Part shown: piece by piece, positions 3,945 through 4,649 of the stretch
How positions within the stretch are numbered: position 1 is the first letter of the stretch
Layout of the letters: each line of letters begins with the position of its first letter
Assembly: GCF_001194135.2 (NCBI RefSeq)
Contig: NC_068994.1
Coordinates: 18,122,370-18,159,010, forward strand
Length of the DNA stretch: 36,641 nt
Direction: 5' to 3'
From: Octopus bimaculoides
Lineage: Eukaryota
The notes under the pieces: model-generated
The model's database searches: none
Told to the model about the DNA's origin: nothing
The model's input: only the letters and a program-made list of their open reading frames with translations
Position numbers and translations under genes: made by a program

Positions 3945-4009
3945 CTCTTTAACTCTTTAACTAGTTTCAGCTTGAGAGCTGCGGCCATACTGATGCACCT
4001 CCGTTAAGT
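3945..4009 (-). mobile_element. SINE/LINE-type 3' tail fused to U6
   Basis: Minus strand GGAGGTGCATCAGTATGGCCGCAGCTCTCAAGCTGAAACTAG(TTAAAGAG)x2 is homologous to the family A tail GGCGGTGCTCCAGCATGGCTGCAGTCAAATGACTGAAGCAAGTAAAAGAG at 10791-10840. Confidence 0.8.
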
Positions 4010-4111
4010 AAAATATGGAATGCTTCACAAATTTGCATGTCATCCTTGTACAGAGGCCAAGCTACTCTTCTCTGTACCATTCCAATTTTGGTGTATGTAT
4101 TGCTGAAACAA
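4010..4111 (-). pseudogene. U6: U6 snRNA retrocopy (near full length)
   Basis: Minus strand TTGTTTCAGCAATACATACACCAAAATTGGAATGGTACAGAGAAGAGTAGCTTGGCCTCTGTACAAGGATGACATGCAAATTTGTGAAGCATTCCATATTTT is colinear with U6. ACAGAGA box and 3' UUUU are intact, many substitutions are CpG decay, and no PSE/TATA is seen upstream. Confidence 0.93.
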
Positions 4112-4649
4112 TGGAATTGACTTTGCCTTTCATCTTTTGGAGATTGATAAAATAAGTGCCATGAATACTGGGACATCAATACGTTCAACTAACCCTGCTT
4201 CCTGAAATTGCTGGTCTTGTGCCAAAACTTGAAACCATCATTTTGATACACATCATCATTGAATATTTTTTTGGTTGACATCAATGATTTATGTGTATGG
4301 CCATTACATGGCTGAGTATGTATACTTTTGAAAGATTTAAACAGGTATTTATTCAAGAAATTCCACTGACATTATGATGGTGAAGGCTGATATTTCTGCT
4401 GTTTTTTTGTATTAGCTACATTTTTTCTGTGATTGTATATACTTATAGACATTATGGAGTTGAATGTTTTGTTGTGTGAGGGTGGGGGTGAGGCAGAGAT
4501 GAAACAGGAATAAATATTGTAAATTCAGAATGGTACCCGCACAGGCAAGAATATGTGTAGGAGTTTTGTGGTATGCAAAGCAGCTGTGTAGTTTTATGAT
4601 GTTGTTAGGAGTGAAGAAAGTTGCTTCTGTCTACGTGCTTATGAACATG

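Follow-up and report, generated by a model that had tools for sequence, protein, structure and literature searches.

A U6 snRNA retropseudogene fused to a SINE-type 3′ tail in Octopus bimaculoides, probably a single chimeric retrocopy

Introduction

Chimeric retropseudogenes of U6 and L1 were reportedly described in mammals by Buzdin in 2002 and by Garcia-Perez in 2007. Such mammalian U6/L1 chimeras are also treated by Moldovan 2019 (PMC6789731), and this paper, together with PMC11838501, establishes RNA ligation as an alternative route to U6/LINE chimeras. Outside the mammalian U6/L1 case, U6 chimeras are known from the platypus (U6-L2 and U6-Mon-1) and from a lizard (U6-L2, U6-RTE and U6-AnolisSINE2), in which the target-site duplications (TSDs) were small or none and the U6 was usually 5′-truncated (Doucet et al. 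2015, PMC4476161). The capture of U6 was there found to be a general property of non-LTR retrotransposons, the stringent ones included (PMC4476161).

Heads are also exchanged among SINEs mobilised by CR1, where the change from TguSINE1 to PittSINE took place by template switching during target-primed reverse transcription (PMC5729268). The tails of CR1-derived SINEs contain a hairpin for the binding of the reverse transcriptase (RT) followed by an 8-bp terminal microsatellite for priming (PMC5729268). SINEs with snRNA heads were described in crocodilians as SINEU, which are multi-copy and have a shared structure (Kojima 2015, PMC4494074).

The locus described here lies in a window of 36,641 nt (36.6 kb) of Octopus bimaculoides, contig NC_068994.1, the window being the whole stretch of DNA that was analysed. 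It contains a minus-strand U6 copy followed directly by a tail that is shared with SINEs of the window. An earlier note, made from the sequence alone, had read the unit as a U6 head fused to a SINE/LINE 3′ tail, and as a candidate for a U6-derived SINE family if the same junction recurs in the genome. The parts, their order and the insertion anatomy were found to agree with the first of these readings, a chimeric retrocopy, which would have been inserted by target-primed reverse transcription. In the literature searched, no description of a U6-headed SINE or of a U6 chimera in a mollusc was found, and strings of the tail sequence returned nothing relevant from the full-text literature. The term 'SINEU' in an octopus paper was found to be the word SINEUP and was discarded.

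Results

U6 head

The head of the unit was found to be a U6 snRNA retropseudogene at 4010..4111 on the minus strand, identified by Rfam RF00026 and by pairwise alignment. The Rfam match (4111..4009, minus strand) covered model positions 1-105 with 80.3 bits and an E-value of 4.9e-19, which exceeds the RF00026 gathering score of 44 over the whole model and places the sequence in the U6 family. In the alignment with canonical U6, nucleotides 5-106 were found to be present whereas the first 4 nt were missing, and the copy was closed by the natural TTTT at 4013-4010. The near full-length minus-strand U6 ending in its TTTT that had been claimed for this place is thus confirmed. No other credible RNA-family match was found by Rfam in the whole window at E<=1, the remaining matches all lying on microsatellite-like sequence, and a U1 or U2 match was absent from the window at the same threshold.

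The pairwise alignment with canonical U6 contained 15 differences in 98 aligned nucleotides, including 13 transitions, with 7 at CpG. Further differences at nt 6 and nt 8 were read from the sequence, which brings the count to 17 substitutions in 102 nt. The copy is about 15-17% diverged and was found to contain no surviving CpG, and the CpG o/e of the whole window was 0.18. The 5′ stem was degraded, the intact 5′ stem-loop and the near-invariant sequence of a functional U6 being absent, and the ACAGAGA box and the AGC triad were still readable. Because all the CpGs are gone, the divergence amounts to 15-17% and the CpG o/e of the window is so low, the copy is, as judged from its sequence, an old retrocopy under neutral decay and no gene.

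Sequence and copies of the tail module

The tail (4009-3945, minus strand) was found immediately 3′ of the U6 T-run with a spacer of zero. It contained ACTTAAC followed by GGAGGTGCATCAGTATGGCC, a single G, CAGCTCTCAAGCTG, AAACTAG and TTAAAGAG TTAAAGAG, and the tail variant of the unit is written as CAGCTCTCAAGCTGAAACTAG(TTAAAGAG)n. The fusion point reads U6-TTTT/ACTTAACGGAGGTGC, and the 29-nt junction sequence is CCATATTTTACTTAACGGAGGTGCATCAG. The minus-strand reading frame was found to be open across the U6, the junction and the tail.

The ACTTAAC at 4003..4009 (minus strand) had been taken for a foreign linker of 7 nt, but the tail module most likely begins with it, and it is homologous to the CCTTCAA of family A. 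It was found to align with the family A CCTTCAA / CTAAA just upstream of the GGnGGTGC box, and it therefore belongs to the tail, which is about 64 nt long and fused directly to U6. The homologous tail claimed by the earlier note stands, whereas its length of about 55 nt has to be replaced by this figure and its linker falls away.

The box GGTGCNNCAGYATGGCYRCAG was found to have 5 occurrences in the window against 0.01 expected by chance, and an nhmmer profile made from the five tails recovered exactly those five window sites, with E-values from 1e-13 to 4e-17. The sites were the U6 tail, three family A 3′ ends (10791-10840, 6405-6462 and 31907-31962) and a fifth at 9492-9546 (minus strand) on a different SINE. 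The homology to the three family A ends, which had been proposed before, is supported by the motif count as well as by the profile recovery. The family A SINE is about 200 nt long against the about 64 nt present at the U6 unit, and the 3′ partner of the chimera is 5′-truncated with its natural 3′ end reached. In the manner of a LINE-type 3′ tail of SINEs, the module is common to two SINE families and its hairpins covary.

Hairpins and terminal repeat of the tail

Tail hairpin 1 lies in the conserved box GGAGGTGCATCAGTATGGCC (3983..4002, minus strand) and was identified by the motif count, by MFE folds and by pairing across 5 tails. MFE folding predicted it for the U6 tail and for 2 of the 4 other tails, and its helix was found to be 94% paired over the 5 sequences, where both partners of 1 pair had changed. 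It is followed by hairpin 2, CAGCT-CTCA-AGCTG (3968..3981, minus strand), which was recognised from compensatory changes; its helix was 96% paired over the 5 sequences, and 2 of the 5 pairs were changed on both sides. The stems of hairpin 2 were CAGCT/AGCTG in the U6 tail, CAGTC/GACTG in family A and CAGCC/GGTTG in family C. Over both hairpins 95% of the cells were paired, which fell to 20-45% when the partners were slid by 1-3 columns. These five sequences give modest evidence that is consistent with the tail being a structured module kept by compensatory changes.

The middle of the tail had been noted as different from family A, and the difference was found to consist in hairpin 2, where compensatory changes retain the pairing. 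Since the variant is compensatory, the donor of the tail would belong to a different tail subfamily, of a SINE or of a LINE, which is in line with the origin that had been suggested for it.

The tail ends in AAACTAG followed by two units of TTAAAGAG (3945..3967, minus strand), the terminal 8-nt repeat, as read from the sequence and from the family B alignment. The corresponding place in family A was found to carry (TAAAAGA)n. Both of the octamers named in the earlier note are present, but the outermost unit (3952-3945) is indistinguishable from the host sequence and possibly belongs to the host, so that the element may have brought just one octamer. The order of two hairpins followed by (TTAAAGAG)2 or (TAAAAGA)n matches the CR1-type layout of a hairpin and then a microsatellite of about 8 nt, and the tail may be called CR1-like in its architecture only.

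With the nhmmer tail profile, no LINE 3′ end carrying the tail module was found within the window. C-terminal ends of an RTE-like LINE ORF2 (YYGHVIRM...RWLD...) were observed at 17081-17314 and 28951-29187 (minus strand), with very short 3′ UTRs free of the tail. Because these ends lack the module, the RTE-like LINE is not the partner of the tail.

The tail was observed to keep two CpGs (4003/4002 and 3983/3982), and at one of these two sites the CpG had decayed in all four other tails. The retention of 2 of 2 CpGs in the tail against 0 of 7 in the U6 head is a post hoc comparison of small numbers, and it hints weakly at a possibly longer decay of the head than of the tail, such as a propagating lineage could show. 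The pattern is unexplained if both parts have the same age.

Insertion site

The unit was found to lie antisense within a family B SINE, the sequence upstream of the U6 head being family B body. This placement had been proposed before, and the alignment with five other family B copies supports it. The left part of the host, with the tRNA-like head, is at 3887..3951 (plus strand) and was delimited by that alignment and by BLAST of the joined flanks against the window. It is followed, on the other side of the unit, by the right part at 4112..4265 (plus strand), which resumes at TGGAATTGACTTTGCC in the alignment. The host runs to ...TCTGGCTCTTTA on the plus strand, to 3951, and restarts at TGGAATTGAC (4112).

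The empty site rebuilt from the five family B copies reads ...GCATTTCnTCyrGC TCTTTA / yGTTCTGAGTTCAAATTCCrC / yGAGGTyGACTTTGCC..., where the bases between the two strokes, about 21 bp, are those lost from the host. A replacement of 25-30 bp had been stated earlier; the loss is real, and its size comes near to that figure (27-28 bp) only if CTCTTTA is counted as tail.

No target-site duplication was found around the U6 unit in the alignment with the five family B copies. The last 7 nt of the unit (3951-3945) were identical to the host CTCTTTA, which, as plus-strand sequence, forms the complement of UAAAGAG in the tail repeat. The 7-nt match, together with the lack of a TSD, bears out the microhomology that had been described in place of a duplication. 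Through this complementarity, a plus strand nicked at that point could anneal to the RNA and prime first-strand synthesis, and the TCTGGCTCTTTA end would, from the anatomy of the site, be the nicked-strand primer. In U6-L2 chimeras, which were primed from a terminal simple repeat, the TSDs were small or none (PMC4476161), and the microhomology, the deletion and the missing duplication at the present site are compatible with such stringent LINEs.

Other repeats in the window

The fifth tail belongs to a very short SINE, family C (9492-9640, minus strand), which was found to contain a tRNA-like head, GGGTTACTTTGGTATAATGGTAG...GGCTTGAGTCC, followed by the tail at 9546-9492, the head being joined almost directly to the tail module. 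Because family C consists of a small-RNA-like head and the tail only, the tail alone is evidently enough for mobilisation. The SINE heads of the window were not recognised as tRNAs by ARAGORN or by Rfam at E<=1, and the heads of families B and C were judged tRNA-like by eye. The tail boundary of the U6 unit coincides with the head/tail boundary of family C and was considered as a template-switch hot spot; the alignment there was too ambiguous, and the idea was dropped.

The most frequent repeat was the family D SINE with the ORF motif WFLWLDALPNANH, of which at least 6 copies were found in the window (16850-17040, 20748-20930, 24231-24473, 27675-27935, 28333-28503 and others). A 1-kb Logan contig (SRR11869391, L022) was observed to carry a family D copy at about 72% identity.

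A decayed LINE RT fragment (FVDLEKAFDR ... YVDD) followed by the presence of a PHD-like Cys-rich motif was found at 6541-7204 on the plus strand. Relatives of the RT fragment 6541-6886 were at most 72% identical and lay on Mb-size contigs of ENA assemblies; one relative locus (L003) contained RVT_1 followed by a weak PHD match and none of the SINEs of the window. Two proteins labelled Escherichia coli (P0124 and P0241, on contigs of 586 bp and 264 bp) were observed to match the window LINE RT (70% identity) and the abundant SINE-derived ORF, and they are probably eukaryotic contaminant contigs in draft assemblies.

The window also contains runs of N, which are assembly gaps, at 11267-12246, 13163-13172, 15823-15938 and 36031-36382. 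These four runs together make up 1,458 bases, and microsatellite-like sequence was observed next to three of them.

Searches in sequence collections

A two-sequence profile of the junction-spanning frame was compared with 5.8 billion proteins, a collection essentially without the genomic ORFs of this organism, and 713 U6-only ORFs were recovered, none of them with the tail peptide. A control profile made from the most abundant SINE ORFs of the window recovered 2 proteins in the 5.8 billion, and the junction ORF of the window itself was absent too. As the control yields 2 proteins, the collections are essentially without this organism and the negative junction searches have no weight.

Metagenome contigs were also searched for the U6 3′ end followed by N{0,20} and the tail box. 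The two matches obtained were on soil contigs without U6 and were rejected as chance, and the 18 matches of the tail variant in GTDB genome contigs were bacterial and were likewise attributed to chance. Two proteins with U6 sequence were observed in passing. Protein P0003, from an ENA contig, contained canonical U6 running straight into ...GGTHVNPWLIHVNVWQKPVQIL, a repeat that looks like the ruminant BovB/Bov-A2 type, so that a further chimera of U6 with an element other than L1 may be present there. Protein P0056 looks like a classical U6/L1 fusion.

Discussion

Origin of the unit

The U6 unit is probably a single chimeric retrocopy that was dead on arrival. Its U6 is in sense orientation and is fused directly, at its natural oligo-U, to the 3′ part of a retroposon, which is the arrangement of a chimeric retropseudogene. 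The parts of the unit, their order and orientation, the structure of the tail, the anatomy of the insertion site and the decay were all observed at the locus.

The formation of the unit can be reconstructed conditionally, and from its anatomy we infer the clade of the enzyme, the mode of joining the two RNAs and the uniqueness of the event. A LINE RT of the stringent type would have recognised a structured 3′ tail with a short terminal repeat in CR1-like layout, and target-primed reverse transcription would have started on a tail-bearing RNA that may have come, whole or as a fragment, from a SINE or a LINE. In the resident family B SINE, a nick would have left a plus strand ending in CTCTTTA, and this end would have annealed to the UAAAGAG repeat and primed the cDNA. 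After about 64 nt of tail the cDNA would have gone on into U6 snRNA, entering it at the natural UUUU, the U6 being joined either by a template switch of the enzyme or by an earlier RtcB-type ligation to a tail fragment with a 5′-OH, two routes that are both established for U6/L1 and that the sequence cannot separate. The synthesis would then have halted 4 nt before the U6 5′ end, and the joining on the far side would have removed about 21 bp of the target with no duplication. The copy, having no promoter, then underwent neutral decay.

Alternative explanations

It is unlikely that the unit belongs to a U6-headed retroposon family with many copies, taking together a true SINE that is transcribed from its own copies and a master locus in which Pol III reads from a promoter-bearing U6 gene through the weak T4 into a tail fragment downstream. 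Such a family would suit the head-plus-tail layout, which is the same as in the minimal family C SINE of the window, as well as the tail, which is structurally intact, of a distinct subfamily and with two CpGs kept where the head has lost all. It would also have parallels, as U1- and U2-headed SINEs exist with their transcription unexplained (PMC4494074) and some real SINEs carry internal T4-T5 runs (PMC4758252). An automated annotation of Octopus vulgaris contains one 'SINE/U' family of 369 kb, given with no description (PMC13282606), and this class probably reflects similarity to U1/U2 rather than to U6. The window, however, contains the one copy alone in its 36.6 kb, the U6 copy is heavily decayed, and the documented U6-SINE and U6-LINE chimeras elsewhere are independent one-off events (PMC4476161). 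In Metazoa, the promoters of U6 are situated upstream of the gene and are left behind in retroposition, which is established knowledge (PMC4494074). At this locus no self-carried promoter transcribing through to the tail is apparent, as a T4 Pol III terminator was found between the head and the tail and nothing but family B SINE body adjoins the head on its 5′ side. The anatomy thus argues against a self-propagating family. The master-locus form, with an intact U6 gene and only rare read-through, would avoid the promoter problem, and we consider it rather improbable that the unit is a member of a U6-headed family in a cephalopod, propagated by master-locus read-through or from copies behind fortuitous promoters.

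The two parts could also have come from independent insertions that abut, a 5′-truncated SINE/LINE tail and a separate U6 retropseudogene that met its 5′ edge precisely. This window is rich in repeats and does contain many nested insertions, but the two parts have the same orientation and zero spacer, no poly(A) and no repeat tail follow the U6, no TSD surrounds either part, and a U6 alone would be without the tail that a stringent LINE requires (PMC4476161). The probability that a U6 3′ end would come to lie no more than a few bases from any of the five tails in 36.6 kb, with matching orientation, was put at <1e-3, which is a rough estimate and not a computed test. Chance abutment of U6 and tail is very unlikely, and two separate insertions are accordingly regarded as highly improbable. 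A functional or recently functional U6 gene adjoining a SINE fragment by chance has a negligible probability. The full-length Rfam match and the readable ACAGAGA box and AGC triad are what such a gene would present, whereas a load of 17 substitutions, with all CpGs lost, effectively refutes it, few known RNAs being as conserved as U6; in addition, the copy starts only at U6 nt 5, its 5′ stem is degraded and the upstream sequence is SINE body with no promoter.

Significance

The documented cases of such U6 capture have so far come from vertebrates and fungi, and the unit, taken as a one-off chimeric retrocopy, would add a clean one from an invertebrate. Despite its need for a structured tail, a LINE RT would here have picked up U6, through template switching or from a pre-ligated RNA, and the U6/tail chimera that this non-L1, tail-dependent LINE would have made appears well preserved in its anatomy. 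It would capture the first step in the origin of a new SINE head, the difference from a successful SINE being that U6 brings no internal promoter. At least two SINE families here make use of the tail, and its compact definition by two hairpins and a 7-8-nt repeat should help to find the partner LINE. If the junction were multi-copy, a new class of SINE head would be at hand and the manner in which such a unit gets transcribed would come into question; if a U6-headed family did exist, no SINE-like family before it would have been built on a type-3 Pol III snRNA.

Comparison with known systems

The mammalian U6/L1 chimeras and the octopus unit both contain a near full-length U6 that ends at its oligo-U and is fused to the 5′-truncated 3′ end of a retroelement, the mammalian chimeras being formed by template switching or RtcB ligation. 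Mammalian L1 is relaxed and poly(A)-dependent and leaves TSDs of 7-20 bp, whereas the octopus unit has a structured tail and an octamer repeat, with no poly(A) and no TSD.

The crocodilian SINEU elements also have a head derived from a spliceosomal snRNA on a retroposed unit, and internal T runs are tolerated in them. Their heads are U1 and U2, which are Pol II snRNAs, and they are multi-copy, whereas the head in octopus is U6 and one copy is known; with this head the unit falls outside SINEU.

With TguSINE1 and PittSINE, the octopus unit shares a small Pol III RNA head followed by a short tail made of an RT-binding hairpin and an 8-nt microsatellite. The heads of those SINEs are tRNAs with internal A and B boxes, by which a chimera is able to become a family, whereas U6 has no known sufficient internal promoter.

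The platypus and lizard chimeras differ from the octopus unit in their host, which here is a mollusc, and in the LINE lineage of the tail. Of the octopus U6 just the first 4 nt are missing, and about 21 bp of the target were deleted. Like them, the octopus unit contains a sense U6 directly upstream of a short LINE/SINE 3′ piece, with a simple-repeat end that would serve for priming and a truncated U6 5′ end; it has no TSD where theirs are small or absent, and its copy, like theirs, is dead.
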